IMG/VR virus record: IMGVR_UViG_3300017991_000002 | Coordinates: 62,001 to 126,000 of that record | Reading direction: 5' to 3' (one strand) | DNA length: 64,000 bases | Part shown: positions 233 to 62,251 of the stretch, piece after piece | How positions within the stretch are numbered: position 1 is the stretch's first letter | Layout: each line of letters opens with the position of its first letter | Notes under the pieces: model-generated | What the model saw: the letters and a program-made list of their open reading frames with translations, nothing else | Database searches by the model: none | Told to the model about the DNA's origin: nothing | Translations under genes and position numbers: made by a program

Positions 233-841
233 ATGGCCTTCAAGTTCGACATTATCTTGAAGCCAAAGAAGAGAGGTAACTGGCGTCCTGAAGTTATTAT
301 TACTCTGGAAATCCTGGCTCCGGCATTTCCACACAGGCCTTACGTACCACGATTACACATAGTCTCAATAAATATGAAGGACTTTATTGAGAAAGGGATA
401 AGGCCTGAAGAGGCAGAATGGTTTTGGCCTGTTACACACGAAAAGCCCTTCAAAATAATTTCACGAGATAAGTGGTTCCTTGATCTCAGCGACCTTGCAA
501 GGGATTCTTCTGATAATCTGAAGGAGGATTGCACCCATGCTTTTCATGATAGTCCAAAGAGGGGCGTGGAGGCTGCTTATCCCTTAACGGGAGGAGACAT
601 AGGTCCCGGTGGATTTCTTGAGGTAAACTATAGACACGATCTACATTTATTTCTGCCGTGGAGGCCGGGAATCAGGCCGGACTATTCAGACTATATGGCC
701 AGGTTTGAAAATGCAGGTCGCTGGTTTGCTGAAAGATTAAAGGACGGCGAAGATAGCGGACAAAACGATGAGATGATTATCTCTGTAACCTCTGCGAGAA
801 AAAAGTCGAGGGAGCAGGGTGTCAGGAAATTACGCTTTTGA
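233..841 (+). CDS. Hypothetical protein with C-terminal RKLRF tag
   Basis: AGGAGGT RBS; 202 aa; ends GVRKLRF*. Confidence 0.8.
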   Translation: MAFKFDIILKPKKRGNWRPEVIITLEILAPAFPHRPYVPRLHIVSINMKDFIEKGIRPEEAEWFWPVTHEKPFKIISRDKWFLDLSDLARDSSDNLKEDCTHAFHDSPKRGVEAAYPLTGGDIGPGGFLEVNYRHDLHLFLPWRPGIRPDYSDYMARFENAGRWFAERLKDGEDSGQNDEMIISVTSARKKSREQGVRKLRF

Positions 842-854
842 ATCTTTGATTACA

Positions 855-1336
855 GGGGGTGAAAATTGCGGCATAAGGATACTATAGCCGAAGCTGGCTC
901 GCCCGCGACCGATCCCTTTCAGAAGAAAGGGCAAATCGGGGAGTTGCACCATAAGGTGCGCCTGCGGAGGAGGAACCGAGAGGATTCTACGGTGGGGCAA
1001 GCGCCGGCCATGCCTGACCAGAGGTCCTATCGCACATTCTTGGGGATGCCTCGGGTGACTCGACAGAAAATAGAATCGAGGCCCAACTTATAAGAGGATT
1101 ATAATAGGATGAACGAAAAAGGAGACCGTGTTCAGTGTGCGAGCTTTATTATCATACTTGGGGATTCCATAGGCTAAGAAGCAGGGATTGATCCTACTCT
1201 TAGAGGATTCCGTTTCAATCTCGGTGGAGCTCAGGGTGGCCACCTTTAAAAACCCCTTGAGGTGGCGGGTGTGGTGAGGAAAGGACTAACCCATAACGGA
1301 GTGTGCAGATGCTGCTCTTACAAAAGGGGTTTTTTA
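855..1336 (+). ncRNA. Candidate large structured ncRNA (unclassified; ends and strand approximate)
   Basis: Intergenic, with many nested and long-range complementary segments (see findings). Confidence 0.55.
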
Positions 1337-1404
1337 TTTCCGCACAAATATAGTGGTCATTATGGCCACTTGAAATATACCCAACCTTTTCAGAAAGGAT
1401 TCAA

Positions 1405-1569
1405 GTGAGAAAGAATCAACGCTGTCCGGGGTGTGGTCGTCGGTACAAAAAATCCCACGACGATCGAGAAAAGAAGTATACGAAGGAATGCTTGTCTTAC
1501 AAGGAATACAAGGCAGCAGCTGCAAAAATTCGAGAAGCAAGAAATATAACCACCAAATCATCTTCGTAG
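1405..1569 (+). CDS. 54-aa basic protein with CxxC (weakly SEC-C-like)
   Basis: GAAAGGA RBS, GTG start, RKNQRCPGCGRRYKKSH; stop overlaps the RBS of the protease gene. Confidence 0.55.
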   Translation: MRKNQRCPGCGRRYKKSHDDREKKYTKECLSYKEYKAAAAKIREARNITTKSSS

Positions 1570-1579
1570 GAGGTGTCAC

Positions 1580-4027
1580 TTGAAGAAGAAGTTCAAAGAA
1601 GTACCCGTCGAATTACTCAGAAAAGTTTGTCCGACCGATATCATGAAATTCAAGACCACCGATGATATCGAACCGTCGTCCAATATCCTTGGCCAAAAAC
1701 GTGCCGTCGATGCTTTAAATATGGGCATTGAGATGAAAGGGAAGGGATTCAATATATTTATCACCGGCGCGCCAGGGACCGGAAGAAGGGAGATGGTTAA
1801 ATCATTTCTCGGGGGCTTGGAGGAGCAGAAGAAGGAGTTTCACGATATATGCTACGTGAACAACTTCCAGAATGAAGACATGCCTACCTTGCTTGCCCTG
1901 CCTAAGGGGCATGGTGTTGAATTGAAGATGGATATGGAGAACCTGACGGAAACAGTTATCCGGAGCACTCCCTCGATTCTTGAAAGTGATGAATACAGGG
2001 AAGCAAGGAAGAAGCTAACGGACGAGTACCAGGAAAAGGAGCAGGAGGTCTTCAAGGAGTTTGAGGAGGTATTAAGCGAGCATGGATTTGGCCTGATTCA
2101 AATTGCCAATCATGACGTGTCAAATGTGCGTCCAGAAATTGCTCCACTTATCCAAGACCGTCCCGTTCCATTGAGAATGCTTGAAGATCAGAAGAAGGAT
2201 GGGATAATCACCAAGGAGAAATTTGATAAGATCAAGAAGACTTATGATGAGCTGAAAATAGAGATGGAAAAGGCGTTCCGTAAATCCCGGGATATTGGTC
2301 GAGAGTTGAAGAAGAAGCTGTCCAATCTGAATGATGACCATATCGGCCCCATGATTGAGGATCAGGTCACTGATCTGTGCTCTAAGTATAAAAGCGAGAA
2401 AGTGGCCGATTATTTACAAGCTGCCAAGAACCATATGGTCTCCAATATCGACCGATTGCAGCCAAAAAACACCGGGGAGCCCCCAAAGAATGAAGCGGAG
2501 GCACAAGGCAGGATGATGGACATGATATTCGGCAGCCAGCGTGATCCGTTGCTGCCTTATAAAGTAAATGTTATCGTGGACAACTCTGATCGCTTGGATG
2601 ACCCTATCGTCTTCGAAAATTTCCCTTCCTATAAAAATCTGTTTGGCTGTATCGAACGGGTCATTGATGCTCGAGGTGGGGCGGTCATTGACTTCATGAA
2701 AATCAAGGCTGGGTCCCTTCTTCGTGCAGACGGCGGTTATCTTATCGTTGATGCCCTGGATATGCTAATGGAATACGGTGTCTGGCAGACCTTAAAGCGA
2801 ATCATGAAGTCCGGAGAGATTGAAATACAGAACTTTGACCCATGGTCTTTTGGTGGGACCCTCCTGAAACCCGAACCGGTCAAGGTCAATGTTAAGATCA
2901 TCCTCATCGGGAGCAGTCACATATATCATCTCCTACACCACTTTGATGAAGACTTCCATAAGATTTTCAAGATTCGGGCTGATTTTGATTCTTCCGTCCA
3001 GCTGGAGAATGAAAGTATTGTCAAGTATGCTGAGCACATCAAGAAAGTCACTGCTGAGGAAGGGTTGCTTCCTTTCTCCAAAAGCGGAGTTGCTGCTATT
3101 GTCGAACAAGGGCTCCGAGAGGTGGGACATCGAAGGAAACTGAGCACCCGGTTCAGTGTGATCGATAACATCGTCCAAGAATCAAGCTACTGGGCGCAGA
3201 AGGATGGCAAAAAGACGGTGGACCATAAGTCGGTCGAGAAGGCACTTCAGGAGAAACGGATCCGGCTGAATATGGTAGAGGAGAAGATCCAGGAGATGAT
3301 TGAGGAAGGAGTACTCCTGATCGATACCGAGGAGCCCAAGATAGGGCAGGTTAACGGTCTTGCCGTATACCAGCTTGGTGACTACATGTTTGGGAAACCT
3401 TCCAGAATCACCGCTCAGTCGTCATTAGGGCGTGCTGGGATATTGAATATAGAAAGAGAGGCCGAGATGTCAGGAAAGATTCACAATAAAGGAGTCTTAA
3501 TCCTGTCCGGTTATTTGAAGGGGAAATATGCTCAAGAATTCCCCTTGAGTATGGAGGCCTCCATTGCCTTTGAACAGTCCTATGCTGGGGTGGAGGGTGA
3601 TAGTGCTTCGAGCACTGAGGCATTTGCCCTTCTTTCTTCCCTGTCGGGACTGCCTTTAAGGCAGGGAATCGCCGTCACCGGTTCGATGGATCAGCTCGGT
3701 CAGATCCAACCGATTGGCGGGGTGAATGACAAGATAGAGGGATTCTTTGATGTCTGCAAGGCACGGGGCCTTACTGGTGAGCATGGAGTTATTATTCCTC
3801 ATCAGAATGTTGAGGATCTTATGCTTCGTAAGGACGTCGTCCAAGCGGTTAAATCCAAGAAATTTCATATTTACCCCATTAAGACAGTGGATGAGGGAAT
3901 GGAAATTTTGACCGGTAAGACAATCCATCAGGTGAATAAGCTTGTCAAGGAACATCTTAAAAGGATGAATGACTTGATGATGGAGACGGGGAACGGGAAC
4001 GGCAATAACAAGAAGGGCAAGAAGTAA
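1580..4027 (+). CDS. lonC: LonC-type Lon-like serine protease (S16) with degenerate AAA+ module
   Basis: GDSASS catalytic Ser, IGGVNDKIEGFF Lys, YVNNF and GSLLRADGGYL motifs, coiled-coil insert; Walker A GTGRRE. Confidence 0.9.
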   Translation: MKKKFKEVPVELLRKVCPTDIMKFKTTDDIEPSSNILGQKRAVDALNMGIEMKGKGFNIFITGAPGTGRREMVKSFLGGLEEQKKEFHDICYVNNFQNEDMPTLLALPKGHGVELKMDMENLTETVIRSTPSILESDEYREARKKLTDEYQEKEQEVFKEFEEVLSEHGFGLIQIANHDVSNVRPEIAPLIQDRPVPLRMLEDQKKDGIITKEKFDKIKKTYDELKIEMEKAFRKSRDIGRELKKKLSNLNDDHIGPMIEDQVTDLCSKYKSEKVADYLQAAKNHMVSNIDRLQPKNTGEPPKNEAEAQGRMMDMIFGSQRDPLLPYKVNVIVDNSDRLDDPIVFENFPSYKNLFGCIERVIDARGGAVIDFMKIKAGSLLRADGGYLIVDALDMLMEYGVWQTLKRIMKSGEIEIQNFDPWSFGGTLLKPEPVKVNVKIILIGSSHIYHLLHHFDEDFHKIFKIRADFDSSVQLENESIVKYAEHIKKVTAEEGLLPFSKSGVAAIVEQGLREVGHRRKLSTRFSVIDNIVQESSYWAQKDGKKTVDHKSVEKALQEKRIRLNMVEEKIQEMIEEGVLLIDTEEPKIGQVNGLAVYQLGDYMFGKPSRITAQSSLGRAGILNIEREAEMSGKIHNKGVLILSGYLKGKYAQEFPLSMEASIAFEQSYAGVEGDSASSTEAFALLSSLSGLPLRQGIAVTGSMDQLGQIQPIGGVNDKIEGFFDVCKARGLTGEHGVIIPHQNVEDLMLRKDVVQAVKSKKFHIYPIKTVDEGMEILTGKTIHQVNKLVKEHLKRMNDLMMETGNGNGNNKKGKK

Positions 4028-4040
4028 CCGGACACTACCA

Positions 4041-4075
4041 GGACATTATCCGGACATTTTGTCCGGTTAGTGTCC
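4041..4075 (+). terminator. Long hairpin after lonC
   Basis: GGACATTA-T-CCGGACA-TTT-TGTCCGG-T-TAGTGTCC. Confidence 0.5.
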
Positions 4076-4095
4076 TATTTAGGGGGACTATAATC

Positions 4096-4257
4096 ATGGG
4101 TATTTTAGTGTCACTTGTTCTTTTTGTTTTTATTTGGTGGATCCTCTGTAAGGTATTTACACCGGGATTCTTTACTTCCTTTATCAGGAGGAGAGCGCCT
4201 GATATCCCGGAAGCAGAGCGTAAACGCAAGCTAAAGATTCGGGAGGACAAGCAATGA
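4096..4257 (+). CDS. 53-aa single-TM protein with RKLKI tag
   Basis: MGILVSLVLFVFIWWILCK...ERKRKLKIREDKQ*; ATGA-coupled to the next gene; below the ORF-track cutoff. Confidence 0.75.
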   Translation: MGILVSLVLFVFIWWILCKVFTPGFFTSFIRRRAPDIPEAERKRKLKIREDKQ

Positions 4258-4643
4258 TCTGGTCAATCATATTGGGCACCTTCTTTGGGATATTTTTTGG
4301 TATATTCTACTTTCTCAACCCTCTTCCCGGGGAGAGTGATGTTCGGGATGGCCGCTATCGGGACATAGATAGTGTGGCAAAGATTCTCGGTACCTTGTTC
4401 TGGGAAGTTGGTGAGGATAATGAGATGAGGGCATACGTGCAGGTACATGAGGAAGCCGCTAGGATCGTAGAAGGCTGGAATGAACGTATTCTGTCCATGC
4501 GAGAGACCGAGTCCCGCCAGCCTTCTAGTGACCAAGAGAATGGCCTGAGGGAGGTACATATTGACATGGAGGAGGAAGAGGTGGAAACTAAACCTCTTAT
4601 AAGGAAGAGAAAACTCAGGATTGAGGGGAGGGGGAAATCATGA
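4254..4643 (+). CDS. N-terminal TM protein with RKLRI tag
   Basis: Hydrophobic N-terminus; ends RKRKLRIEGRGKS*. Confidence 0.8.
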   Translation: MIWSIILGTFFGIFFGIFYFLNPLPGESDVRDGRYRDIDSVAKILGTLFWEVGEDNEMRAYVQVHEEAARIVEGWNERILSMRETESRQPSSDQENGLREVHIDMEEEEVETKPLIRKRKLRIEGRGKS

Positions 4644-4999
4644 GGACTGTTTTATGGTTATTATTCTTTGGGGCTTCGTTTTATCTCTCCCTTCTTAGCG
4701 TGGTCACTAGAGATACTGCTAAGGGAAGGGGATTGGAGGGTGAGGATTATCATGTATTTATGGACATGAGGATTAAAAGGTCCCCAATTATCTGGTTCCT
4801 TCTCGCTGCGTCCGCTATTCCCTTAATATTCTTGCTGATATACGGTGTTTTTACTTTCCAGTGGCAGGCATTTGTACTGATCCTTATGGCCTCGTTGAGC
4901 CACAACCTAAGGAAGAGGGTTAACATATCCTACTGTATCGATCAGCTGATTAACTGTGTATGCTTAGGAGTTCTGTGGACATGGGTAATGAAGATATAA
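4640..4999 (+). CDS. Multi-pass membrane protein
   Basis: 3-4 hydrophobic segments; ATGA overlap. Confidence 0.75.
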   Translation: MRTVLWLLFFGASFYLSLLSVVTRDTAKGRGLEGEDYHVFMDMRIKRSPIIWFLLAASAIPLIFLLIYGVFTFQWQAFVLILMASLSHNLRKRVNISYCIDQLINCVCLGVLWTWVMKI

Positions 5000-5220
5000 A
5001 GCAGGTGAAGGGATATCACCTTTTATCAAGATCCGCGGTGATCCCCCTGGTTAATAGGGTTACCGGTGAGGAATATGTGATAAATAATGATCACATGTTC
5101 GGAATTTTACGACAGTTCGAGTTCCTGGTTCATGATGGAGAACTTATTCCTTTTAGCGAAGGTGTTTTGGAGACTCCCCAGCCTTTAAAATCAAAAAGAA
5201 AACTCAGAATTAATCCGTAG
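4981..5220 (+). CDS. Hypothetical protein with RKLRI tag
   Basis: AGGAG upstream of ATG 4981; ends SKRKLRINP*. Confidence 0.7.
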   Translation: MGNEDIKQVKGYHLLSRSAVIPLVNRVTGEEYVINNDHMFGILRQFEFLVHDGELIPFSEGVLETPQPLKSKRKLRINP

Positions 5221-6742: not shown

Positions 6743-6777
6743 AAGCCCATCCGGACACGTTCCGGGTGGGCTTTTTT
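6743..6777 (+). terminator. Intrinsic terminator
   Basis: AAGCCCATCCGGA-CACGT-TCCGGGTGGGCTT + T run. Confidence 0.8.
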
Positions 6778-6801
6778 GTTTATTTTTCCAGGGAGAGAAA
6801 A

Positions 6802-7329
6802 ATGGAATATTTAATAGATACGTTTTCTTTTGGGACCTTTGTAAACAGTCGTGGAGAAATGAGAGACGTGATGAGTTATATAACCGCGAGCAATTCGATC
6901 CCTAGAGATCAAGGTCTAGAGTTTCATAATCTAGATCATAATGGAGTAGTATGGTCTTTGGCAGGGCAACGAGGACCGATATTCTACTTCCAGGAATGGG
7001 ACGGTCTTAACAGTATATTTGTTACCACTGAAGGTCGTTCATTTCACGCTGATCCGTCGAGGCTGGGATGGGATATAGCCTGTGTAATTAAAGGACTACT
7101 GGCGGAAAATAGGAGGACACTTTTGGTCTTGACTCCTGTCAATAACAATGAGTATCCGGTAGGGTTTGCCATATGCAGAGTTTATGTGGTTCGTGCAAAT
7201 TTGATATGGGCTGTCCTAAATAAAAACAGGACTACTGCTGTTCCTATTGGTGAATGGATAGCCGAAACCGATACTGATGTCGGAAAGAGCCCCCCCTTGA
7301 AGGGTCGCAGAAGGTTGAGGATTGTATGA
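6802..7329 (+). CDS. Hypothetical protein with RRLRI tag
   Basis: GGGAG RBS; ends GRRRLRIV*. Confidence 0.8.
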   Translation: MEYLIDTFSFGTFVNSRGEMRDVMSYITASNSIPRDQGLEFHNLDHNGVVWSLAGQRGPIFYFQEWDGLNSIFVTTEGRSFHADPSRLGWDIACVIKGLLAENRRTLLVLTPVNNNEYPVGFAICRVYVVRANLIWAVLNKNRTTAVPIGEWIAETDTDVGKSPPLKGRRRLRIV

Positions 7330-7595
7330 GATTATATATGAGCAAAGAAGGGGTAACGGAAGCCATAAGAGTAATGGGAGAATTAATTGATCTTCTCGAT
7401 GCCCCCGGTATCATGGCCGATTTCCAATCGCGACAAATGGTCAGGGCAATACGAGGACATTTCAGAACTATTGCCGGACATTTTAATAAACACGGACAGA
7501 TAACATTTATTGATTTGGAGATGAAGCTTAAGACACCGGAAGACTTACAACAATATAGGAGAAGATTGAGACTGGAGGATGACAATGGCATATAA
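7326..7595 (+). CDS. Hypothetical protein with RRLRL tag
   Basis: ATGA overlap; ends RRRLRLEDDNGI*. Confidence 0.75.
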   Translation: MRLYMSKEGVTEAIRVMGELIDLLDAPGIMADFQSRQMVRAIRGHFRTIAGHFNKHGQITFIDLEMKLKTPEDLQQYRRRLRLEDDNGI

Positions 7596-8094
7596 ATTAT
7601 ACCTACCTCATCCGGTATCGTTTAGGACATCGCTCACTAATTCTTCTTACCTCAGTAGAAAATTCCGCGGTTTGTTGAGGAATATTATTGGTACCATAGA
7701 GCTGGATAGGGGACGTCTTGTTGATACAGGTGGGGGAACAGTAGCATTTCTAAGGTCGGTCAATCCAGATACACATTACACAATTCATCTTAGTGGATGG
7801 CATCCTATCCCTGAAACCGTAATCAGAAACTTTGGAGTTATCTTTTCCTCCTTGATAGAAATAGACTCAGTTGTCCTTTTTACAGCCTGTAACTTTCCAC
7901 AAGGATCCGAGAAAATCGGCTACAGGGTTATGAGGGGAGATATTCGGCGTCTATATTTTCCGGCCTGTATAAAACTGGAAAACGGGGTCTATGTTCGGAT
8001 TGACTCCGACTTTGCCGTAAAACACCTCGGCCGGGATGAAGGGAAGAGGAGAGGTAAAGTAACGACAAGAAGATTGAGAGTAGGAGGTCGGTAA
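7585..8094 (+). CDS. Hypothetical protein (paralog of 8094-8552) with RRLRV tag
   Basis: Shares EKIGY...FPACI.L.NG with the next gene. Confidence 0.8.
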   Translation: MAYKLYLPHPVSFRTSLTNSSYLSRKFRGLLRNIIGTIELDRGRLVDTGGGTVAFLRSVNPDTHYTIHLSGWHPIPETVIRNFGVIFSSLIEIDSVVLFTACNFPQGSEKIGYRVMRGDIRRLYFPACIKLENGVYVRIDSDFAVKHLGRDEGKRRGKVTTRRLRVGGR

Positions 8095-8552
8095 TGGAGC
8101 ATGAGAAGGAATTCTTACCCCATAATATACAGATCAAGACATCTATTAACAGCACTCCCTATTTTAGAAGGAGGCTCCGTGACTTGTTGTTCCGTCTTCC
8201 TGGAGACGATTCATACTCAACAGACAAACCACTGGGAGAAATAGCAAACGTGCATTTTCATCCCCCAACAGCCATTATTTATTGGTATTCCTCAATACCT
8301 CGTTCATTATTCAAAGGGTTTGCTCTCGTTTTCTGTGAGATTATAAAGAAGGGGGAGTTGGCTTACTTTGTCTCGCACGACTTTGAGAAGATCGGATATG
8401 CCATTTGGCGAGGGGGAATCCACGAAGTAATTTTTCCGGCATGTATCAGACTTGCAAATGGGACTATTATGCCTGCCTCAGAATTTGACTTTATAAGGAA
8501 CGCTAAGATAGAAAAGGTACCTTCAGTAAGAAGGTTAAGGATTCCAAAATGA
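8094..8552 (+). CDS. Hypothetical protein (paralog of 7585-8094) with RRLRI tag
   Basis: TAATG overlap; ends SVRRLRIPK*. Confidence 0.8.
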   Translation: MEHEKEFLPHNIQIKTSINSTPYFRRRLRDLLFRLPGDDSYSTDKPLGEIANVHFHPPTAIIYWYSSIPRSLFKGFALVFCEIIKKGELAYFVSHDFEKIGYAIWRGGIHEVIFPACIRLANGTIMPASEFDFIRNAKIEKVPSVRRLRIPK

Positions 8553-8851
8553 GTGGCTGGGTAGAAGACCTCATCATGGGCCCCAGCCAATGTTACTTCT
8601 TCGTTGTTTTTAAGGACACGCGGTATTGCCTGTACCTTAGATGGCGGGACAGGAACCCGTGGAAGGGGTATATTATCAAGGATGTTCAATGGGTAGGGAC
8701 GATAACAGGAGGTAAGATGTCTGATGATCTCCTAAAGCAAAGAGGACTCTACTTTAGACAGGAAGAACACAAAAAGGCGCAATCGGCCATGATGCTTGCC
8801 TGGAATGATTATGTGAAAGGAAAGGTAAATATTTCCTTTGGGAGGAACTGA
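8549..8851 (+). CDS. Hypothetical protein
   Basis: Coupled ORF; YLRWR..PW motif. Confidence 0.75.
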   Translation: MSGWVEDLIMGPSQCYFFVVFKDTRYCLYLRWRDRNPWKGYIIKDVQWVGTITGGKMSDDLLKQRGLYFRQEEHKKAQSAMMLAWNDYVKGKVNISFGRN

Positions 8852-9138
8852 TGTCAAAACGATATATAGAGGATACAAAAATGAATAACGAATTTGATGA
8901 CCCAAGAATTGTTTCATTGGTACGAGGGATAGAAAGAGTAAAATACGAGGCCGAAAGTGCCCAGTGTCTAGAGGTTGTTGTTGTCCTTAATACTCTCCTG
9001 GGCGCCCTCCTCTGCGGCAGGTTGGTGGACCTGACAAAACTCTGTCAGGAGTTTGCTGGGGAGATAAGAGAAGAGCTTGCCAGCAAAAGACCAAAAAGAA
9101 AGATTCGAGTCAATGAAGATACCACATCGACCAGATAA
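8851..9138 (+). CDS. Hypothetical protein with RKIRV tag
   Basis: TGATG overlap; ends KRKIRVNEDTTSTR*. Confidence 0.7.
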   Translation: MSKRYIEDTKMNNEFDDPRIVSLVRGIERVKYEAESAQCLEVVVVLNTLLGALLCGRLVDLTKLCQEFAGEIREELASKRPKRKIRVNEDTTSTR

Positions 9139-9367
9139 TATTGGTCCTTTCAAGGTAAGAAAGAGTAAGAAATATACAAGAAAGTGGAGAATCTGTTATG
9201 GTTCACTTACTGTATTGGACAGGATAAATTTTAAGCGGGATGCTGCCCGAGAAGCTTACAACATAAACAAGCCGTGGAGGGACGCCATAACTAGGCTGAA
9301 TATAACAGATGGAGTTATTCCAACCTTCAGGAGACTTAAAGTGAGGGCGGAAGAAGGAGAAGAATAA
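9113..9367 (+). CDS. Hypothetical protein with RRLKV tag
   Basis: Ends FRRLKVRAEEGEE*; start uncertain. Confidence 0.7.
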   Translation: MKIPHRPDNIGPFKVRKSKKYTRKWRICYGSLTVLDRINFKRDAAREAYNINKPWRDAITRLNITDGVIPTFRRLKVRAEEGEE

Positions 9368-9673
9368 ATGATATCACCGCACATGTTAGGGAGATATGAG
9401 TTCCACAGTCAGTCAACTGATAGCCATAAATTTTATCATGTATACTTTGACCACATGACAGGAACATATACATGCGAACATGGTCGATGTGGAAGAACTT
9501 CTATGAAGATCATGAGAGGTATTCCCGAGGAGAAGGCCCTCAAAAAGATAGTGGAGAAGATTAATAAAGGATATGAGAAAGTGACCGATCGCGGTTATAC
9601 CATAGAAGTCAATCGGGGTTCATCCCCTCCAACCCATAAAGTGAGAAAGCTTACTGTTCAGGAAAAGGGATAA
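9368..9673 (+). CDS. WGR-like domain protein with RKLTV tag
   Basis: SHKFY...HGRCG...EKINKGY pattern typical of WGR domains. Confidence 0.7.
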   Translation: MISPHMLGRYEFHSQSTDSHKFYHVYFDHMTGTYTCEHGRCGRTSMKIMRGIPEEKALKKIVEKINKGYEKVTDRGYTIEVNRGSSPPTHKVRKLTVQEKG

Positions 9674-9939
9674 TGCTATTTACTAACCGGATGGTCAGAG
9701 ACATGCTAAGGGACATAAACTGTATACCTGATCAGGGGCTTGTCGACATGGTAAGAGATGATCTGAACAGAGATCAGATATATAACGAAATCGCCAGAGC
9801 TCATACTAACTACGGCCGTATGCTTTATATCGATTTTTTAAGGGTTCTTGAGGAGAAAGTAGATATAGCTCTGAGAGCTTTAACTATTGAAAAGGCACGT
9901 TTGGGGGAGCCTATAAGGAGGTTGCGTATACATGAATAA
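9673..9939 (+). CDS. Hypothetical protein with RRLRI tag
   Basis: TAATG overlap; ends PIRRLRIHE*. Confidence 0.75.
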   Translation: MLFTNRMVRDMLRDINCIPDQGLVDMVRDDLNRDQIYNEIARAHTNYGRMLYIDFLRVLEEKVDIALRALTIEKARLGEPIRRLRIHE

Positions 9940-10132
9940 TAAAGGAATTATTGAGCTGCAACATAGTATCGAGTCAATCCTGTCTGACCCACAGATAATT
10001 CCTGTTTTTGATTTTCCTATAGAGGAGACTTACTCTTCCCTAATAGAGAGGCATCGGATACCGGAGGACATGTTAGTCAAACCAAAAAGGATATACTCTG
10101 TCAGAAAATTGAGGTTACCGTGCGTATCCTAA
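9932..10132 (+). CDS. Hypothetical protein with RKLRL tag
   Basis: Ends SVRKLRLPCVS*. Confidence 0.7.
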   Translation: MNNKGIIELQHSIESILSDPQIIPVFDFPIEETYSSLIERHRIPEDMLVKPKRIYSVRKLRLPCVS

Positions 10133-10536
10133 AGGTTGGGAAGAAGCCAAGAGCCAAGCGTCTGGAGATGCCTCGGCTTATTGATTGGGACAACCCAGAA
10201 ACTCAGAGAATAATTAGGGCGGCCAGGTGTTATGTTCGTAGAGATAGAGGTTTGGAGTACCCCAGCGGAACCAGATTATGGAGGGGAAGACAGGGAGGTA
10301 TATGGTTACCTTCTAATGGGGAGTGGCAGGAATGTTGCAATCATATAAAGCCTCCGATACCTAACTACCCATTTACACACTACAGACATTGTAAAACTAT
10401 AAAGCATATAATTCATCTTTATAAGGTTGATTATAAGGCTACAAAGGAGTTTATAAACCTGATAGTAAAGGGGGTGATACCTATGGAGGACAGTAAGATA
10501 GGGAAGCATAAACGGGTCTTAAGGATACGAACTTAA
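10120..10536 (+). CDS. Basic Cys/His protein with RVLRI tag
   Basis: W.P...E.QECC..I.PP....PF....HC.T.KH motif; ends KRVLRIRT*. Confidence 0.75.
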   Translation: MRILKVGKKPRAKRLEMPRLIDWDNPETQRIIRAARCYVRRDRGLEYPSGTRLWRGRQGGIWLPSNGEWQECCNHIKPPIPNYPFTHYRHCKTIKHIIHLYKVDYKATKEFINLIVKGVIPMEDSKIGKHKRVLRIRT

Positions 10537-10786: not shown

Positions 10787-11053
10787 ATGCTTAGGTTTTT
10801 TACTCTGCTTATGCATAAACACAGATGGCGTCGGATCGCTTTCTTTTTTGCGCCGCCTTCTGGGGAGCTGTTTCGACGATCCCTGGACGGTCCTACCAGG
10901 GAGAGGGCGACATACGGTATAACGACCATTGTCTGGGAATGTGATATTTGCGGAAAGTCTAAAAAGATGGAAGTTCTCGGCGAGGTTGTTGATCGGCCCC
11001 CTGTCGAGCAAAGGACGGAAAAGTACTCTAGGAGGCTTAGCATCCAAAGGTAG
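10787..11053 (+). CDS. Zn-ribbon-like protein with RRLSI tag
   Basis: AGGAGG RBS; HKHRW...CDICG; ends SRRLSIQR*. Confidence 0.75.
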   Translation: MLRFFTLLMHKHRWRRIAFFFAPPSGELFRRSLDGPTRERATYGITTIVWECDICGKSKKMEVLGEVVDRPPVEQRTEKYSRRLSIQR

Positions 11054-11319: not shown

Positions 11320-12063
11320 ATGGGTATCTTTCAATTGAACCATCGTCAAGAGTTGAACACTTTACAAGTACCATCCGCAACCGCAACGTATCAGCCAATC
11401 CCCCATCGGGATGCTTTGGAGATTGTGGAGGACCAGTTCAAGAGAAGCGGTTTTTCCATTCAAAAGGAGTCAATTAGTATTGGGCAGGAGGGTCTCGTCA
11501 TGGCAGCCAAGTGGCAGTTGGAGCCTGAAGGGTTTGAAGCGATGCCGTCGCATTCGCCTATTGCTGTTGTCCTGAACGGTAATACGCGGAAGCACACCCT
11601 CAGAGTTGGTTTTGGGCTGAATTGCATGGTTTGTACCAACGGCATGTTCATTTCTGAGAAGTCAATCAAGAGAAAACACACCAAGAATATCTATCTTGAC
11701 ATCCCGGACATGGTCTATGATATGATCCAAAGCTCGGAGAATTGGTACTCGAAGTTTATGGGATTTCTGGAGGAGTTGAAGGATTTTGAACCAAGACGAG
11801 AGTACGTCAATGATATGTTGGTTCGATCAATGGAGGCAGGAGTCATCGCTTCCTCTCACATCAGAAAAGTCCTGAACATCTTCAGCGATCCAACTTATGA
11901 AGAGTATGGTAATGACACGTTGTATACTCTCCACAACGCTTATACCGAGGTTCTTCGTGACACCTCGACGGATATGGAAATTCCGCGGAAAACGATCAAA
12001 CTGAACGAAATGATCGATGGGATCAGGAACAATTTTCGATCTCGTAAACTCAGAATTCAGTAG
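11320..12063 (+). CDS. DUF932-like protein with RKLRI tag
   Basis: TYQPIPH, VCTNG, KRKHT, LHNAYTE motifs; ends RSRKLRIQ*. Confidence 0.75.
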   Translation: MGIFQLNHRQELNTLQVPSATATYQPIPHRDALEIVEDQFKRSGFSIQKESISIGQEGLVMAAKWQLEPEGFEAMPSHSPIAVVLNGNTRKHTLRVGFGLNCMVCTNGMFISEKSIKRKHTKNIYLDIPDMVYDMIQSSENWYSKFMGFLEELKDFEPRREYVNDMLVRSMEAGVIASSHIRKVLNIFSDPTYEEYGNDTLYTLHNAYTEVLRDTSTDMEIPRKTIKLNEMIDGIRNNFRSRKLRIQ

Positions 12064-12559: not shown

Positions 12560-12586
12560 AGGGGCCCTTTTTGGGCCCCTCCTTTT
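12560..12586 (+). terminator. Intrinsic terminator
   Basis: AGGGGCCC-TTTTT-GGGCCCCT-CCTTTT. Confidence 0.7.
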
Positions 12587-12596
12587 GGAGATTATT

Positions 12597-13019
12597 ATGG
12601 GCACCTTTAAGATTGGTAAAGCTTCCATAGCTTCCCTTGCATTCCGGCAGTTGGAGCTCATGGACAACGATTTTCAATATGCCAAGTATTGTCTGTCCTC
12701 TACCCTGCCTCCTCTGTTAGAATTCTTTACTGATCTCCCAAGTGAGGAGATCGCTGAAGTCAATACGAAATTAATAAAACGAACAGACGGGGGTTGGAAT
12801 ATTATAGTCAGGGCGTTGACGGAAGTGAACAGGGATTGTACTAATAGTGCGTTGAAAACTCTTCCAGACCATGCAATAGTTCAGTTCAGAGACGGGGGTT
12901 TCGAAATAACATTCAAGTTCCCGGGACCGAAAATGTTCAGATCCAGGGTATGGGAAGGTTTAGTAGCGCCAGATACCAGAAAGCCTGTTAGGAAGTTAAA
13001 CATCAATAAGGAGGAGTAG
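12597..13019 (+). CDS. Hypothetical protein with RKLNI tag
   Basis: GGAG RBS; ends PVRKLNINKEE*. Confidence 0.75.
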   Translation: MGTFKIGKASIASLAFRQLELMDNDFQYAKYCLSSTLPPLLEFFTDLPSEEIAEVNTKLIKRTDGGWNIIVRALTEVNRDCTNSALKTLPDHAIVQFRDGGFEITFKFPGPKMFRSRVWEGLVAPDTRKPVRKLNINKEE

Positions 13020-13021
13020 CT

Positions 13022-13927
13022 ATGTCACATTTCACAGTTCTCGTTATCGGCGGCGACCCAGACGGGCTCTTAGAGCCTTATTGGGAGCTTGATTTGAGTG
13101 CCGAGGAGATGATTAATGATCCGAGGGCAGAGTTCAAAATTGAGGTTATTAACACCCCCTCCACAGGTGTTATACCTCCCCCCGGTTCTCGATTTAATTA
13201 TCCTCATGATGTAGAGACAGTGGATGAGTTGTTTGCCAAATTCAAATCCGAGCATCCGGACAGGGCTGATCAATACGGAGACATTCGTCAGTGGCTGGAC
13301 GTTTGGCACGGCTTTACCTACAGCGAGGAGCACAATGCATGGGGGTATTGGAGCAATCCCTATGCTAAATGGGACTGGTACCAAATCGGCGGCAGATGGG
13401 CAGGACTCCTTGTCCTGAAACCAGGAAAGAAGGGTCATAGGGGAGAGGAAAGTTGGACCTGGGACGGAGAGGGTCCTTACAAACCAGACGATAATAGGGC
13501 CAGAGTAGATCAGGCATTGTTTGATGACATTGACTGGGACTTTATGGACACCCCTACGGAGAAGGAACTCAAAAACATGGAATCGATATGGTACCATAAT
13601 GTCGAAAATCCGCTGACCAATGAACAGCTGCAGAGTGTGTCGGAGGAGGAAAGACGTGAGATACTGCAGTTTAGGTCTTTTTACAACCGTCAATACTTTG
13701 TTGATCGGTACGGCACCCTCGAGAAGTATATTGAGGCCGAAGGTAAGTTTTCGACCTACGCTGTTCTGGATGCCGCGGGGTGGCATAGTCCCGGTGATAT
13801 GGGGTGGTTTGGTATGTCTACAGAGTCTCATGAGGATTCAGTACTATGGTCTTTAAAATTTAGAGAGAACTTTTTAACAAACGTGGATCCGACAGAATTG
13901 ATCACTGTCGTTGATTGCCACATTTAA
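13022..13927 (+). CDS. Conserved phage protein (NP.AKWDWY.IGGRW family)
   Basis: MSHFTVLV start, G.MGWFG, terminal VDCHI. Confidence 0.85.
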   Translation: MSHFTVLVIGGDPDGLLEPYWELDLSAEEMINDPRAEFKIEVINTPSTGVIPPPGSRFNYPHDVETVDELFAKFKSEHPDRADQYGDIRQWLDVWHGFTYSEEHNAWGYWSNPYAKWDWYQIGGRWAGLLVLKPGKKGHRGEESWTWDGEGPYKPDDNRARVDQALFDDIDWDFMDTPTEKELKNMESIWYHNVENPLTNEQLQSVSEEERREILQFRSFYNRQYFVDRYGTLEKYIEAEGKFSTYAVLDAAGWHSPGDMGWFGMSTESHEDSVLWSLKFRENFLTNVDPTELITVVDCHI

Positions 13928-13941
13928 CAAAGGAGGTTTTT

Positions 13942-14628
13942 ATGGGAACAAGAGGAGCTTATGGATTCAGAATCAATGGTAAGGACAAAATCACTTACAA
14001 CCATTATGATTCCTATCCCAGTTATCTCGGTTCGAGTATTTTGGGGTTTATTGAAGAGACTCCTATCGAGGATATGAAGAGTATAGCAGAGAAGATAACC
14101 CTTATCATAAATCAAGATGCTGCCCCATCCGAGCAAGATATTTCCAGATACAAGGACTTCATGGATCTTGAAGTCAGTAAACAAAGTGAGAAAGATTGGT
14201 ATTGTCTTCTTCGTAAGGCACAGGGTAATCTCAACATCTACAAGAACCCTTCGTTCCTTCATATGATTGACAACCATGATTTCCTTCTGGACAGTCTGTT
14301 TTGTGAGTGGGCATATATTATTAATCTTGACGAGAAGGCCCTCGAGATTTATACCGGGTTCAATAAGAACAGACACGCGAAAGGCAGGTATGCAAGTGGT
14401 AAAGATCCCCAAAGCGATAAAGATTACTACGGTGTGGCCCTTGTTGTCAGCATACCGTTAAGTGCCCTGAAGGAGGATAAAGAGGGAGCGGTAAAGATAG
14501 TCAGGTGCTCAGATTTCTCTCAGATACCTTATGGTAAGGAGACTAAGAAAGAGATCATTGAAATGCTGGGAGCGTCGGACAGCCCTGAAAAATCGAAAAG
14601 GGTTCTTAAAGTCCAGGAGTCTGTGTAA
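13942..14628 (+). CDS. Conserved phage protein (MGTR...HYDSYP family) with RVLKV tag
   Basis: DSLFCEWAYIINLD motif; ends KRVLKVQESV*. Confidence 0.85.
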   Translation: MGTRGAYGFRINGKDKITYNHYDSYPSYLGSSILGFIEETPIEDMKSIAEKITLIINQDAAPSEQDISRYKDFMDLEVSKQSEKDWYCLLRKAQGNLNIYKNPSFLHMIDNHDFLLDSLFCEWAYIINLDEKALEIYTGFNKNRHAKGRYASGKDPQSDKDYYGVALVVSIPLSALKEDKEGAVKIVRCSDFSQIPYGKETKKEIIEMLGASDSPEKSKRVLKVQESV

Positions 14629-15144: not shown

Positions 15145-15388
15145 ACCATTCTGCACCAAGTGCAGTAAAACCATGGATTGTTATAAGGTAGGCGCAGCAG
15201 TAGTTACAATGGCCAGAAACGAAGAAGGGGAAAAATTCCCTCTAACATTGCGGTGGGGGGACATTTATAAATGCCCCTCCTGCGGAAACGAAGTAATTAC
15301 AAACTTTGGAAGTTCAAATTCGAATGCGGCAGAGGTTGAAGCAAACGTTAAAAACTTATCTTCTTTTTTTGAGGAGGATGTCTCTTAA
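15137..15388 (+). CDS. Zn-ribbon protein
   Basis: CTKC...CPSC. Confidence 0.75.
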   Translation: MTEPFCTKCSKTMDCYKVGAAVVTMARNEEGEKFPLTLRWGDIYKCPSCGNEVITNFGSSNSNAAEVEANVKNLSSFFEEDVS

Positions 15389-15699
15389 TGACAGACATAC
15401 TTAAATGTCCTTTTTGCGGAAGCAGTCATCTTTACAGGATAGAGGCAGTGTGGGCCCTTGCACGAATAGAGCCAGTTGTTAACTCTGTATTCGAGCTAGA
15501 TTGGACGTACACAGGGGAAACTGATGTAATATGGGATTCTCAAGGGAGGAAACTTGTACCTGACGGCGTACCGGAATTCCAATGTGCTGAGTGTGCACTA
15601 GAATTTGACAGTAACCTTAAACCATCTCATTCTTCCGATAAATTAAAGAGGAATGAGAGAGTCAAGACAGGAAGAGTTCTAAGACTTAAAAAGGAGTAA
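15388..15699 (+). CDS. Zn-ribbon protein with RVLRL tag
   Basis: CPFC...CAEC; ends GRVLRLKKE*. Confidence 0.8.
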   Translation: MTDILKCPFCGSSHLYRIEAVWALARIEPVVNSVFELDWTYTGETDVIWDSQGRKLVPDGVPEFQCAECALEFDSNLKPSHSSDKLKRNERVKTGRVLRLKKE

Positions 15700-16065: not shown

Positions 16066-16688
16066 ACGATTCAATAAGTAATGTAAAGGGACACCTTGAA
16101 CCTCTTGCTCTTTTTAGCCTTAAGGAATTGGGCAGAGATTTGGTTTCCTATTTCAACCGTATAAGTGTTACCGGAACCTCACTGGAAGTGGTTGGGATAC
16201 GGCTATTCAGAACACATGGCTATGTAGCTCTTAAATGTACCCTGGAGAACGGGTACAAGGAGACTCGCCTACTCCAGATAACCATAAAAAAGAGGGTAGC
16301 GTCTTATGTGTGTCATGTATTTGAAGAGGGATACTTTAATCATTTTGATTGCCCAGATAGTATATTAAGCCTGCTGTCCCCGCCTGATACGGAAGTGATC
16401 GGGGAGTGGAGGGAGAACTGCAGAGAGAGGAACATGAGGTATGATGAAGCAAGGAGAGCGTGGAGAAGGTTAAAACCTGGTGACATTATCGAGGTTCATG
16501 GTTATAGATACATGCTGATAAGCAAAAGGGGCCAGATATGGTCGCAGGAAGTAGACTGGGACGCCCCATTTCGCTGTGCATTCATCAGGCCCCACTGTAA
16601 ACTCCACAAGACCGAAGTTGTCGGTAAAAGATCCATTTGTCCCCTTGTGAAGCAGCAATTTGGCCTAAGGACAATACCTAGGAGATGA
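16062..16688 (+). CDS. Hypothetical protein (start uncertain, possibly ATA)
   Basis: DCP.SIL.LLSP......EWRE.CR motif. Confidence 0.65.
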   Translation: MNDSISNVKGHLEPLALFSLKELGRDLVSYFNRISVTGTSLEVVGIRLFRTHGYVALKCTLENGYKETRLLQITIKKRVASYVCHVFEEGYFNHFDCPDSILSLLSPPDTEVIGEWRENCRERNMRYDEARRAWRRLKPGDIIEVHGYRYMLISKRGQIWSQEVDWDAPFRCAFIRPHCKLHKTEVVGKRSICPLVKQQFGLRTIPRR

Positions 16689-60802: not shown

Positions 60803-61042
60803 ATGAGAAAGACCGATAATTTGCGGAACTTTAGTCGATCTGTTATAAAGCACATTACCTCTGGAATGATTACCGTAGATCGTGATACTTACGATAACAG
60901 GATGAAAGAATGTGACTATTGTATAGAACGTATGGGGTCTCGCTGCAGAGCCTGTGGATGCTTTGTTAAGATAAAGGCAAGATGGTTGGAGCAGAGATGT
61001 CCTTTAAATAGGTGGGAAACATACAAAGGAGAGGATTCATGA
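60803..61042 (+). CDS. Cys-rich small protein (C..C...C..CGCF..K.....CP..RW)
   Basis: Conserved Cys pattern. Confidence 0.7.
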   Translation: MRKTDNLRNFSRSVIKHITSGMITVDRDTYDNRMKECDYCIERMGSRCRACGCFVKIKARWLEQRCPLNRWETYKGEDS

Positions 61043-61329
61043 ACATTGGCGAGTTTAAAGAAAGAATAAAAGATATTCCGGATGATTGGGAATTCACGAA
61101 TTCGTTTTACTATGTCATAGATGAAGAGGCCGGCGTGATGGTTATTGTTCACAGACCTTTTGTGGGTGTCCTAGTGGATCAAGCAGAGAATCAGATTGCA
61201 TTTGTCTCCGGGGAAGATTTGGAGGCAACCGATAAGGCATGTCACGAAGTTATCCCTTTAACTGAAAACTTTAAGATCTCCGAACTGGATCCTTTGGATG
61301 AGGAGGACGAGGATGATAACGGGGATTGA
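61039..61329 (+). CDS. Acidic hypothetical protein
   Basis: GGAGAGG RBS, ATGA overlap. Confidence 0.75.
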   Translation: MNIGEFKERIKDIPDDWEFTNSFYYVIDEEAGVMVIVHRPFVGVLVDQAENQIAFVSGEDLEATDKACHEVIPLTENFKISELDPLDEEDEDDNGD

Positions 61330-61561
61330 GTTTGTTGCAGATGACATCGGTGATGACCCTACTGTCTTGTCCGGAAAACTTATGATCAAGTATGAAATTC
61401 CTGTAATAAAGTTTGAGTGCGTGATTACTTCCAATGGAGTGGAGTTTAAAGATGTCGTCACCAATAAACCAAGAAGGCTGTACAGGAAATTAAGATTGCC
61501 GGTTTATAAAAATGCCAGTATGCCCACTTATAGTGGACATATTGGCACAGAAATAAACTGA
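61313..61561 (+). CDS. Hypothetical protein with sub-terminal RKLRL
   Basis: AGGAGG RBS. Confidence 0.65.
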   Translation: MITGIEFVADDIGDDPTVLSGKLMIKYEIPVIKFECVITSNGVEFKDVVTNKPRRLYRKLRLPVYKNASMPTYSGHIGTEIN

Positions 61562-61626
61562 TTATTGACAATATAACTTACAACCCACAACAAAACTATG
61601 GGATACAGGAGATAAGGTCAAGTAAG

Positions 61627-61917
61627 ATGAAGGACGGTACTATAGACAGCATAAAGGTGGATGGGAAGAGGAGGAAACTTGCAACACCATTGTCTGTTAA
61701 TATCATTCCTGACGATACTGTGGGGTTTATTGCTGTGTGTGAGGATCTGATCCTTTTCGGGACAGGGAGAACTAAGATACAGGCTATAAAGGATCTTCGA
61801 TCAATAGTCTCTCATTTCTACGAGTATTACAGGGACATTGAGGAGGATAAGTTAATAGGTCAGGCAATTCTTCAAAAACGATACTATGAAAATTTATTGG
61901 AGGAGGATAATGATTAG
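61627..61917 (+). CDS. HicB-like fold protein
   Basis: FIAVCEDL.LFGTG.T..QAI.DL. Confidence 0.55.
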   Translation: MKDGTIDSIKVDGKRRKLATPLSVNIIPDDTVGFIAVCEDLILFGTGRTKIQAIKDLRSIVSHFYEYYRDIEEDKLIGQAILQKRYYENLLEEDND

Positions 61918-62251
61918 AGAAAAATTGTATCTTGAGTGTTCCTGTTCGAGTGATGAACATACACTGAGGTTTACTTTATGGAGGTCAGAGTTCGACGATA
62001 CACAGGAGGTGGAGATATTTGCTCACGTTTTCCTTAATGATCGGCCTCTTCTTGGAAGAATAAAAAATGCCATAAAATATATCTTCGGGTATAAGTGCCG
62101 GTATGGTCATTGGGACGAATTTATCACAAATGATCCCGAGGAGGTAAAAAGATTACGGGATATGTGCAATAAGTTTCTTGAGCTAAGTGATGAAACACTT
62201 CCCAAGGAACTGAACAAAAATAGAAAAATAAGACTTGGAGGAGAAGAATGA
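61910..62251 (+). CDS. Conserved phage protein with RKIRL tag
   Basis: C.C...EH; RIK.A.KYIFGYK.RYG.WDE; ends NRKIRLGGEE*. Confidence 0.8.
   Translation: MIREKLYLECSCSSDEHTLRFTLWRSEFDDTQEVEIFAHVFLNDRPLLGRIKNAIKYIFGYKCRYGHWDEFITNDPEEVKRLRDMCNKFLELSDETLPKELNKNRKIRLGGEE

Follow-up and report, generated by a model that had tools for sequence, protein, structure and literature searches.

Short peptides that address proteins to a common destination have been described in phages and in related protein shells, although in the cases known to us each label involves only a handful of proteins. The internal proteins of T-even phages are diverse, fast-evolving small defense proteins, several of them anti-restriction proteins, which share only a capsid-targeting sequence (PMC3012670). 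The capsid-targeting sequence of T4 is N-terminal, about 10 residues long, and removed by the prohead protease at an (L/I)-x-E site. Cargo of the HK97-fold encapsulin shells (Family 1) carries short C-terminal targeting peptides, the one motif quoted being a TVGSL-type sequence (PMC8346489); these peptides sit on a flexible linker, and the cargo genes are adjacent to the shell gene. Other C-terminal signals lead to proteases: the disordered C-terminal region of the host adaptor SspB ends in a short segment binding the N domain of ClpX (PMC9963277), whereas the C-motif-2 ClpX degron of MuA ends the protein with basic and then hydrophobic residues, ...NRRKKAI (PMC12723719). The SspB segment has an L-R-V core. 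Eukaryotic docking motifs of the R-x-L (cyclin) or R-V-x-F (PP1) type also combine basic and hydrophobic residues in an alternating pattern and bind a groove in extended form.

Against this background, at least 57 small, mostly unrelated proteins of one uncultured 205-kb phage end in the same five-residue peptide, R-K/R-L-R/K-I/V/L, which looks like a protein-level address label for one common partner. Literature searches for the peptide strings and for a shared C-terminal motif on phage proteins found no prior description, and none on this scale for any phage. Roughly one in five small proteins of the phage carries the label, which provides a functional grouping for about 57 proteins of unknown function, a single peptide with which to fish out the receptor, and possibly a portable tag for loading or routing proteins in phage engineering.

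The C-terminal tag and its carriers

The window analyzed comprises 64,000 nucleotides (positions 62,001 to 126,000 of the IMG/VR record IMGVR_UViG_3300017991_000002). The original prediction listed 26 genes in it ending in R-[RKVI]-[LI]-x-[IVLFM], and this observation is real: every one of the 26 exists and has its pentapeptide 0–8 residues from the stop. All of them lie on the + strand. The series begins with 233..841 (202 aa; tag RKLRF at 824-838, 0 aa from the stop), 4096..4257 (53 aa; RKLKI at 4225-4239), 4254..4643 (129 aa; RKLRI at 4608-4622), and 4960..5220 (86 aa, or 79 from ATG 4981; RKLRI at 5197-5211). It continues with 6766..7329 (187 aa; RRLRI at 7309-7323), 7326..7595 (89 aa; RRLRL at 7560-7574), the paralogs 7579..8094 (171 aa; RRLRV at 8068-8082) and 8094..8552 (152 aa; RRLRI at 8529-8543), 8851..9138 (95 aa; RKIRV at 9097-9111), 9077..9367 (96 aa; RRLKV at 9329-9343), 9368..9673 (101 aa; RKLTV at 9644-9658), 9673..9939 (88 aa; RRLRI at 9916-9930), 9932..10132 (66 aa; RKLRL at 10103-10117), 10120..10536 (138 aa; RVLRI at 10513-10527), 10787..11053 (88 aa; RRLSI at 11030-11044), 11320..12063 (247 aa, DUF932 family; RKLRI at 12043-12057), and 12585..13019 (144 aa; RKLNI at 12990-13004). 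The claim that 13 of 17 consecutive genes at 6.8–13.0 kb carry the tag holds with the ORFs listed.

Further downstream, the tag was found in 13915..14628 (237 aa; RVLKV at 14599-14613), 15388..15699 (103 aa; RVLRL at 15673-15687), 16685..17053 (122 aa; RIIKL at 17021-17035, the weakest match), 20249..20566 (105 aa; RKLTV at 20543-20557), 26697..27314 (205 aa; RKIKI at 27279-27293), 27602..27904 (100 aa; RKLNM at 27869-27883, with an internal RRLRV 62 aa from the end), the paralogs 27906..28484 (192 aa; RKLSL at 28452-28466) and 28481..28978 (165 aa; RRLRV at 28958-28972), and 61886..62251 (121 aa; RKIRL at 62222-62236), the only strict carrier in the right half of the window. A possible variant carrier, 42512..43084 (+, 190 aa), has the tail RRQKLRI 7 aa from the stop, with Q in place of the first R. 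The start originally given as 26642 is out of frame with its ORF, although the tag is the same, and the starts 4981, 6802, 7585, 9113, 12597, 13942, and 61910 are internal ATGs of ORFs whose first possible start lies upstream in the same frame, which does not affect the tag.

Walking the genome (about 187 of 205 kb) brought the number of carriers to 57, situated on both strands, all of them C-terminally tagged and 53–332 aa long, with a median near 120 aa. Framing the tag as one of early proteins inside one 62-kb stretch is therefore too narrow. Carriers outside that framing include truncated paralogs of the capsid protein and of the prohead protease, as well as a Lar-like restriction-alleviation protein. 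At the same time, no replication, packaging, or tail protein in the roughly 187 kb read has the tag, and the idea that the canonical capsid protein and prohead protease are tagged was rejected on inspection of both.

The carriers represent about 24 unrelated families. All-against-all BLASTP of the 26 carriers with the tails removed found the two paralog pairs and nothing else, and the PHROGs hits went to four different families. The statement that the carriers have different folds is thus supported only in the sense of unrelated sequences: DUF932 alone was confirmed by Pfam, and the WGR-like and Api92-like labels were not reproduced. Most carriers are ORFans, so very deep homology cannot be excluded by BLASTP alone. 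Still, descent of all carriers from one fast-evolving paralogous family retaining only its C-terminus seems very unlikely, since DUF932, a Lar-like zinc ribbon, a Gp23-fold fragment, and a prohead-protease fragment are demonstrably different families and each carries the tag, homologs of DUF932 and of the capsid protein in other phages lack it, and the 30 nt upstream of the tags are unrelated to one another.

Selection of the tag at the protein level

Absence of enrichment over composition-matched tails had been named in advance as an outcome that would overturn the prediction; the opposite was observed. Of 100 greedy + strand ORFs, 23 carry the tail motif, whereas shuffles of the whole protein, the last 20 aa, and the last 13 aa expect 0.8, 1.1, and 1.6, respectively, with a maximum of 9 in 2000 shuffles. 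A weight matrix placed 26 of the 30 best hits among roughly 19,000 positions in tails, the top 18 all being tails. A regex-free k-mer scan of all C-terminal 14-mers recovered only pieces of the tag: RKL (36 observed vs. 1.7 expected, p about 1e-34), then KLR, R.L.I, R.L.V, and LRI.

The other outcome named beforehand as fatal, i.e., conservation explained by an overlapping ribosome-binding site (RBS) or another DNA sequence, was likewise ruled out as the cause of the tag itself. The tags are purine-rich (AGA/AGG Arg codons) and lie just upstream of the Shine–Dalgarno sequence of the next gene, and the RBS does explain the E/G/K-rich residues following the tag. However, the motif is frame-locked (26 in-frame vs. 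2 off-frame), the distance from the tag to the next start codon varies from 1 nt to more than 25 nt, and no DNA repeat cassette underlies it. As originally stated, the codons vary: Leu, Ile, and Val codons follow genome usage, all six Leu codons are used, and third codon positions are random, pairwise identity being 0.32 there against 0.69 at positions 1 and 2. A tagged gene that ends its transcription block and faces a convergent gene rules out translational coupling as the reason for the tag. An ssrA/tmRNA origin does not apply either, since every tag is encoded in its own ORF, with varied codons.

The comparison of homologs, also proposed earlier as a check, showed the tag to be specific to this lineage in the DUF932 carrier (11320..12063): its orthologs keep the tag, but none of 152 representative homologs and none of about 22 distant phage homologs has it. 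Overall, orthologs at 57–63% and 43% identity keep the tag while the neighboring residues drift; the ortholog of 13915..14628, at 43% identity, ends in RKLRL plus 13 more residues. The background in other phages is 5 of 1233 ORFs. Relatives of the tail sheath (50 loci) show background tag levels, but these loci are structural modules, which are also untagged in this phage, so the result says little. No DNA similarity to GenBank phages was found, and by protein, the closest cultured phages share only about 24–26% portal identity, so neither host nor family could be assigned. Single-protein scans of IMG/VR returned only the source contig, and two scans of the genome collection found nothing.

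The suggestion that a P/S/K-rich linker precedes the tag is partly right: in the 15 residues upstream, P is enriched 2.1-fold and K 2.0-fold, hydrophobic residues are depleted (0.21 vs. 0.30), and S is not enriched. The invariant and near-invariant residues of the tag fall at positions 1, 3, and 5, the pattern expected for one face of an extended strand. Binding as a beta strand is only an inference from this alternation; AlphaFold2 models the one tail tested, that of the DUF932 carrier, as a helix extension at lower confidence (pLDDT 73) on a core with pLDDT 94. Foldseek of this model against the PDB found nothing at E <= 0.001. The AlphaFold2 model of the Gp23-like paralog was poor (pLDDT 32), and PDB sequence searches for the Gp23-like protein, a 462-aa protein, and the short protease were empty or meaningless.

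Possible receptors of the tag

The interpretation offered originally is partly supported. Its core, a short linear motif selected at the protein level and added repeatedly to unrelated proteins so that one partner recognizes them, is well supported, while no particular partner is. The analysis itself demonstrates a genome-encoded pentapeptide, R-[K>R]-L-[R>K,N]-[I/L/V], selected at the protein level and added in this phage lineage, at the end of a proline- and lysine-rich, hydrophobic-poor linker, to the C-termini of at least 57 small accessory proteins of unrelated sequence. The simplest reading, held with high confidence, is a docking peptide addressing all carriers to one common receptor. 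What this receptor is, and hence any specific use of the tag, belongs to inference; Pfam and PHROGs searches revealed no peptide-binding domain family or receptor candidate among the untagged proteins of the window.

The use ranked first, albeit tentatively, is capsid loading. In this model, the tag would bind the inside of the assembling prohead (scaffold core or capsid protein), and the carriers would be packed into the head and delivered into the next cell together with the DNA as a pre-made set of host-takeover and anti-defense proteins; if so, the phage ships an unusually large protein arsenal with its DNA. As in the T-even internal proteins, a short peptide is the only similarity among otherwise unrelated small phage proteins, and, as in encapsulin cargo, a short C-terminal peptide (0–9 aa from the stop) follows a linker of the composition described above. 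A giant phage head can hold about 50 different proteins, including more than 40 MDa of ejection proteins (PMC7411985). The phage has a gp23-type capsid protein, of the same fold lineage as encapsulin shells, a T4-type portal, and a gp21/phrog_207-type prohead protease. With the tag removed, the carriers are slightly more basic than untagged neighbors (median pI 7.0 vs. 5.5, p = 0.04). The carriers are small and include truncated paralogs of the capsid protein and the prohead protease; the Lar-like carrier would gain from being present when the DNA enters, and no cytoplasmic replication enzyme or tail protein is tagged.

Several facts speak against capsid loading. The canonical prohead protease, which must enter the prohead, is untagged, and the tagged capsid-like and protease-like proteins are truncated paralogs, not the working head proteins. 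The known phage capsid-targeting peptides are N-terminal and cleaved by the prohead protease at a defined motif, whereas this tag is C-terminal and of unrelated sequence, and no recurring (L/I)-x-E or (S/A/G)-x-E site was seen next to it, although the tails were read by eye and not tested formally. The consensus is also unlike the TVGSL-type encapsulin motif, and the carriers are spread over at least 187 kb, far from the capsid gene. The phage is uncultured, there is no virion proteome, no timing data, and no identified receptor, and the presence of the carriers in the virion is untested. Carrier genes are interleaved with untagged genes in blocks that look like early or accessory regions by position and also hold LonC, AAA ATPases, an RNA ligase, and nucleases. 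Fifty-seven different cargo species would be without precedent.

A tether or degron for a protease or unfoldase is a possible but doubtful alternative, ranked only slightly lower. In this view, the tag docks the carriers onto an AAA+ machine, either a host ClpX-type one or the phage's own LonC-like protease working with its Cdc48-like or BCS1-like AAA ATPases, so that the carriers are removed on schedule or, as SspB-type adaptors, deliver whatever they have bound. To our knowledge, this would be the first phage-wide system of timed turnover or targeted degradation; no phage is known to us to mark dozens of its own proteins for turnover. The layout of a folded domain, a flexible P/K-rich linker, and a short basic and hydrophobic C-terminal peptide matches that of SspB, although SspB is a single host protein, and its L-R-V core resembles L-R-I/V here; binding to the zinc-binding N domain of ClpX was neither assayed nor modeled, and the ClpX of the unassigned host was not examined. 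The resemblance to the MuA-type degron leaves the matter undecided: the chemistry is similar, but only 1 of 52 tags ends the protein, most being followed by 1–6 residues and two in this genome by 12, and ClpXP-dependent degradation was not measured. In contrast to the MuA motif, which ends the protein, the tag tolerates 0–13 further residues and has a near-invariant Leu at position 3. Since the tag can lie up to 12–13 residues from the C-terminus, a free carboxylate is not part of the signal, in contrast to pore-recognized C-terminal degrons. The confinement of the tag to small accessory proteins and its absence from enzymes needed throughout infection agree with this view, whereas the well-folded state of at least one carrier (pLDDT 94) does not.

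The adjacent LonC, proposed originally as a candidate protease, was confirmed as an untagged LonC-like gene (1580..4027, +, 815 aa) lying among the tagged genes and keeping the Ser and Lys of the catalytic dyad, with two classic-clade AAA ATPases in the same blocks. It is of the cellular, ATP-independent type and about 50% identical to many bacterial LonCs; all its close homologs are cellular, and it is a cellular acquisition with no phage relatives, so its co-occurrence with the tag in phages, envisaged earlier as a check, could not be shown, and nothing links it to the tag. LonC is reported as ATP-independent (PMC13069640, PMC3391209), and no degron is mentioned in the LonC cryo-EM paper (PMC13069640).

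Localization to another hub, a phage-made or host structure that is neither the capsid interior nor a protease, e.g., a replication or assembly factory, the nucleoid, a chaperone, or the ribosome, seems less likely. The evidence for a single shared receptor applies here equally, and the lysine- and proline-rich linker with a strongly basic tag would suit an acidic surface or nucleic acid. On the other hand, no hallmark of a nucleus-forming jumbo phage was seen in the roughly 187 kb read (no multisubunit RNA polymerase, and sigma-like genes instead), and an invariant R and a near-invariant L argue for a specific pocket rather than generic charge. The resemblance to the eukaryotic motifs, drawn already in the original prediction, is an analogy only: the partners are eukaryotic, and no homolog was sought or found.

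A more speculative and improbable possibility, not excluded by the data, is that the carriers form a modular “bait and deliver” arsenal, a phage counterpart of adaptor-mediated targeted degradation. Each small domain would bind a different host protein, e.g., a defense sensor, and the common tail would plug the complex into one machine, a protease or unfoldase, that destroys or disables it; the tagged, truncated copies of the capsid protein and the prohead protease would then be decoys for host sensors recognizing those proteins.

As for the timing of expression, sigma-70-type sites are not enriched and T4-type late promoters are absent, but a phage-specific promoter-like element, which does not separate tagged from untagged genes, was found.

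Genomic context of the tagged genes

The window, a 64-kb stretch (about position 62,001 onwards in IMG/VR coordinates), belongs to a 205-kb viral contig, IMGVR_UViG_3300017991_000002. Independent assemblies of the same genome are circularly permuted (205,367 to 205,387 bp), suggesting that the genome is probably complete. No cultured phage is close to it: the search for DNA similarity returned no match, and the best identity of the portal protein was as low as 24-26%.

Almost all genes in the window reside on the + strand. The first 30 kb harbors about 65 small ORFs along with a LonC-like protease (1580-4027), followed by a replication module comprising two helicases and two fused replication or repair enzymes, i.e., a uracil-DNA-glycosylase-family domain joined to the 3'-5' exonuclease and family A polymerase (38878-41754) and an SbcD-like phosphoesterase joined to an SbcC-like ATPase in a single 974-aa protein (46589-49513). 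A terminase-like gene and a T4-type portal come next. Just after the portal region, a 1039-aa protein (56964-60083) displays DUF5060 and GH5 cellulase-family hits; it may represent a virion-associated glycan depolymerase.

A C-terminal signal operating at the protein level

The observation underlying the original prediction was confirmed: all 26 genes listed in it end in R-[RKVI]-[LI]-x-[IVLFM] within 8 residues of the stop, although one of the listed starts (26642) is out of frame, the actual ORF being 26697-27314. Comparison with shuffled tails had been proposed in advance as a trial of the motif, and the motif withstood it: of 100 greedy + strand ORFs, 23 carry the motif in the last 13 residues, whereas shuffling gave 0.8 (whole protein), 1.1 (last 20 residues) or 1.6 (last 13 residues) and never more than 9. 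These ORFs were called mechanically, but they agree with the gene calls supplied with the fetched loci. A weight matrix built on the tags placed 26 of its 30 best hits, out of about 19,000 positions, at C-termini, and the top 18 are all tails. The 100-aa carrier at 27602-27904 possesses, in addition to its C-terminal RKLNM, a second, internal copy of the motif (RRLRV, 62 residues from the end). A scan ignorant of the initial pattern, in which all 3-mers and gapped 3-mers of the C-terminal 14-mers were compared with protein bodies, recovered only pieces of this tag (RKL, 36 vs 1.7 expected, p about 1e-34; KLR, R.L.I, R.L.V, LRI) and no second tail motif.

Several lines of evidence indicate that the signal is read in the protein rather than in the DNA. 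Thus, translation of all frames yielded 26 in-frame tail matches and 2 off-frame ones. The codons for Leu, Ile and Val in the tags follow the genome-wide usage, and all six Leu codons occur. Pairwise identity between the tag DNAs is 0.69 at codon positions 1 and 2 but 0.32 at position 3, the 30 nt upstream are unrelated (0.29), and no direct-repeat family underlies the tags. A 22-nt unit (CAGGACATTATCCGGACATTTT and variants) does occur in the window as two overlapping or adjacent copies at each of two sites, 4028-4060 and 7442-7484, the first of which lies in the gap between the LonC gene and the first following tagged gene. An overlapping ribosome-binding site, specified beforehand as an explanation that would overturn the prediction, accounts only for the residues after the tag (G, K, E, S, R), which are those encoded by the next gene's Shine-Dalgarno and overlapping start, while the distance from the tag to the next start varies from 1 to more than 25 nt. 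Moreover, a tagged Lar-like gene is the last gene of its block and faces a convergent gene, so the tag is not a coupling device. A nucleic-acid artefact is therefore considered to be very unlikely.

Distribution of the tag among carriers and their homologs

The carriers are unrelated to one another, and the tag was added to them. With the tails removed, all-against-all BLASTP revealed two paralog pairs (7585/8094 and 27906/28481) and nothing else, and PHROGs hits fall in four different families; common descent of the carriers is accordingly regarded as very unlikely. The 247-aa carrier at 11320-12063 is a DUF932 protein, and its homologs served for the alignment that the original prediction had suggested as a test of lineage specificity. 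Its orthologs at 57-63% identity end in RKLNI, RKLNI and RRLRM, with R and L invariant and the residues just before them different. In contrast, two intermediate relatives (E about 1e-65), the other 150 representatives found by a full HMMER search and about 22 distant homologs in other phages all lack the tag. Many DUF932 homologs from other phages (proteins P0125-P0139 and loci L015-L047 of the retrieved set) end instead in a hydrophobic residue, one further residue, then L-N at the very C-terminus (e.g., ...SLN, ...ALN, ...DLN, ...VLN), which may be a different conserved C-terminal feature replaced in this lineage by the R-K-L-R-I tail. A second ortholog pair, at 43% identity, carries RVLKV and RKLRL in tails that otherwise do not align, and on the related contigs a gene with no counterpart in the window also ends in RKLNI. 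The background in unrelated or distantly related phage loci is 3 of 537 and 2 of 696 ORFs.

The system turned out to be much larger than initially noted. The genome was walked piece by piece, with about 187 of 205 kb read and about 18 kb left unread, and a hand count of the listings gave 57 carriers with the tag within 9 residues of the stop: 26 in the window, 5 to its right, and 26 on the opposite strand, in a leftward block of small genes that diverges from the window's block. In addition, two tags lie 12 residues from the end, and there is one RRQKLRI variant. An automated census found 52 carriers; in it, 0 of 26 proteins of 400 aa or more and 1 of 22 proteins of 250-400 aa are tagged. The consensus from those 52 is R (52), K34/R13/V3/I2, L49/I3, R35/K8/N6/T2/S1, I18/L14/V14/M5/F1, with the near-invariant classes at positions 1, 3 and 5. 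The 15 residues before the tag are 2-fold enriched in Pro and Lys and poor in hydrophobic residues. In a confident AlphaFold2 model of the DUF932 carrier (pLDDT 94), the tag ends a terminal helix extension of lower confidence (pLDDT 73).

The untagged proteins include all replication and recombination enzymes, the terminase and the portal, as well as the sheath, tape-measure-like, baseplate and adaptor proteins. The canonical 529-aa prohead protease (phrog_207, E = 1.7e-44) is untagged, as is the canonical gp23-type major capsid protein encoded just after it. The gene of the latter (2236-4976 of locus L057, a part of the same genome outside the window) is in at least three pieces, matching residues 2-75, 72-247 and 358-487 of a relative's capsid protein and separated by intervening sequence that holds a 340-aa ORF with HNH or homing-endonuclease hits, suggesting introns or an intein-like insertion in the capsid gene.

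The tagged proteins are mostly ORFans, along with DUF932 and a Lar-like restriction-alleviation protein. Two more carriers are truncated, diverged paralogs of head proteins, encoded on the minus strand in accessory-gene blocks far from the real head genes. One of them (10357-11355 of fetched locus L051) is a 332-aa Gp23-family protein, which lacks the N-terminal ~170 residues of its roughly 500-aa homologs and has gained a P/K-rich linker plus RKLKV. The other (5960-6463 of fetched locus L052) is a 167-aa paralog of the prohead protease, in which the conserved G-I-S-S-R-G reads G-F-S-I-C-G.

Possible roles of the tag

The interpretation offered in the original prediction, a short motif by which one partner recognizes all carriers, was supported in part. 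That the tag is a docking peptide for one shared receptor is well supported by the sequence analysis and is held with high confidence, whereas the identity of this receptor, and hence every use of the tag considered below, is a matter of inference. Complexes of the tag with candidate partners were not modeled, and the co-occurrence of the tag with a single partner gene, another comparison envisaged at the outset, was not assessed, since only a handful of short contigs represent tagged relatives. A hub other than the capsid interior or a protease is deemed unlikely. Peptide address labels as such are known; it is the sequence, the C-terminal position in a phage, the lineage-specific spread and the scale (at least 57 proteins) that were not found to be described in the literature accessible to the search.

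Capsid loading was ranked first, though only tentatively. The only established phage precedent for diverse small proteins sharing nothing but a short peptide is that of the T-even internal proteins and their capsid-targeting sequence (PMC3012670). HK97-fold encapsulin shells load their cargo through short C-terminal peptides (PMC8346489), and giant phage heads can hold about 50 protein species (PMC7411985). The carrier set fits this picture, being composed of small, somewhat basic proteins, including an anti-restriction-like protein and head-protein paralogs but excluding cytoplasmic enzymes and tail parts. Still, the canonical protease is untagged, no cleavage motif is visible, the carrier genes sit in early-looking blocks, and neither timing nor proteome data exist for this phage. 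As to potential regulatory elements, a conserved promoter-like element, a T-rich tract followed by CAGAAACGTATAAGTATAGTAG, was detected in nine copies: at 33708 and 55831 of the window and, in the fetched loci, at L111:3002, L055:3019 and 8674, L053:2121 and 9346, L009 about 6111 and L051 about 2994. All of them are on the gene strand, 10-40 nt upstream of start codons; none occurs in the tail or head operons, and T4-type TATAAATA late promoters are absent.

A tether or degron for a protease or unfoldase comes second, as a possibility that is likewise doubtful. The domain-linker-peptide layout matches that of SspB (PMC9963277), and the basic C-terminal degron of MuA is chemically similar (PMC12723719). 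Against this reading, the tag tolerates up to 12-13 trailing residues. The phage also encodes, among the carriers, a LonC-like protease with the Ser and Lys of its dyad intact and two classic AAA ATPases. However, LonC is reported as ATP-independent and no degron is described for it (PMC3391209, PMC13069640), and the phage copy is a cellular acquisition with no phage relatives. It is about 50% identical to LonCs of many bacterial phyla, and its two closest homologs sit in ordinary bacterial neighborhoods; its Walker A-like site reads GAPGTGRR, with Arg where Lys is canonical, which fits the ATP-independent LonC type. As for the ATPases, a Cdc48-like AAA ATPase in locus L009 (6598-9143, about 1-3.5 kb upstream of the window) appears to be split: ORF 6598-7761 matches the first half of the AAA domain and ORF 8610-9143 matches the second half, with an HNH endonuclease ORF (7819-8523) between them. 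A second classic-clade AAA ATPase (485 aa; 1083-2540 of locus L111), closest to mitochondrial BCS1-type chaperones among solved structures, lies inside the leftward tagged-gene block.
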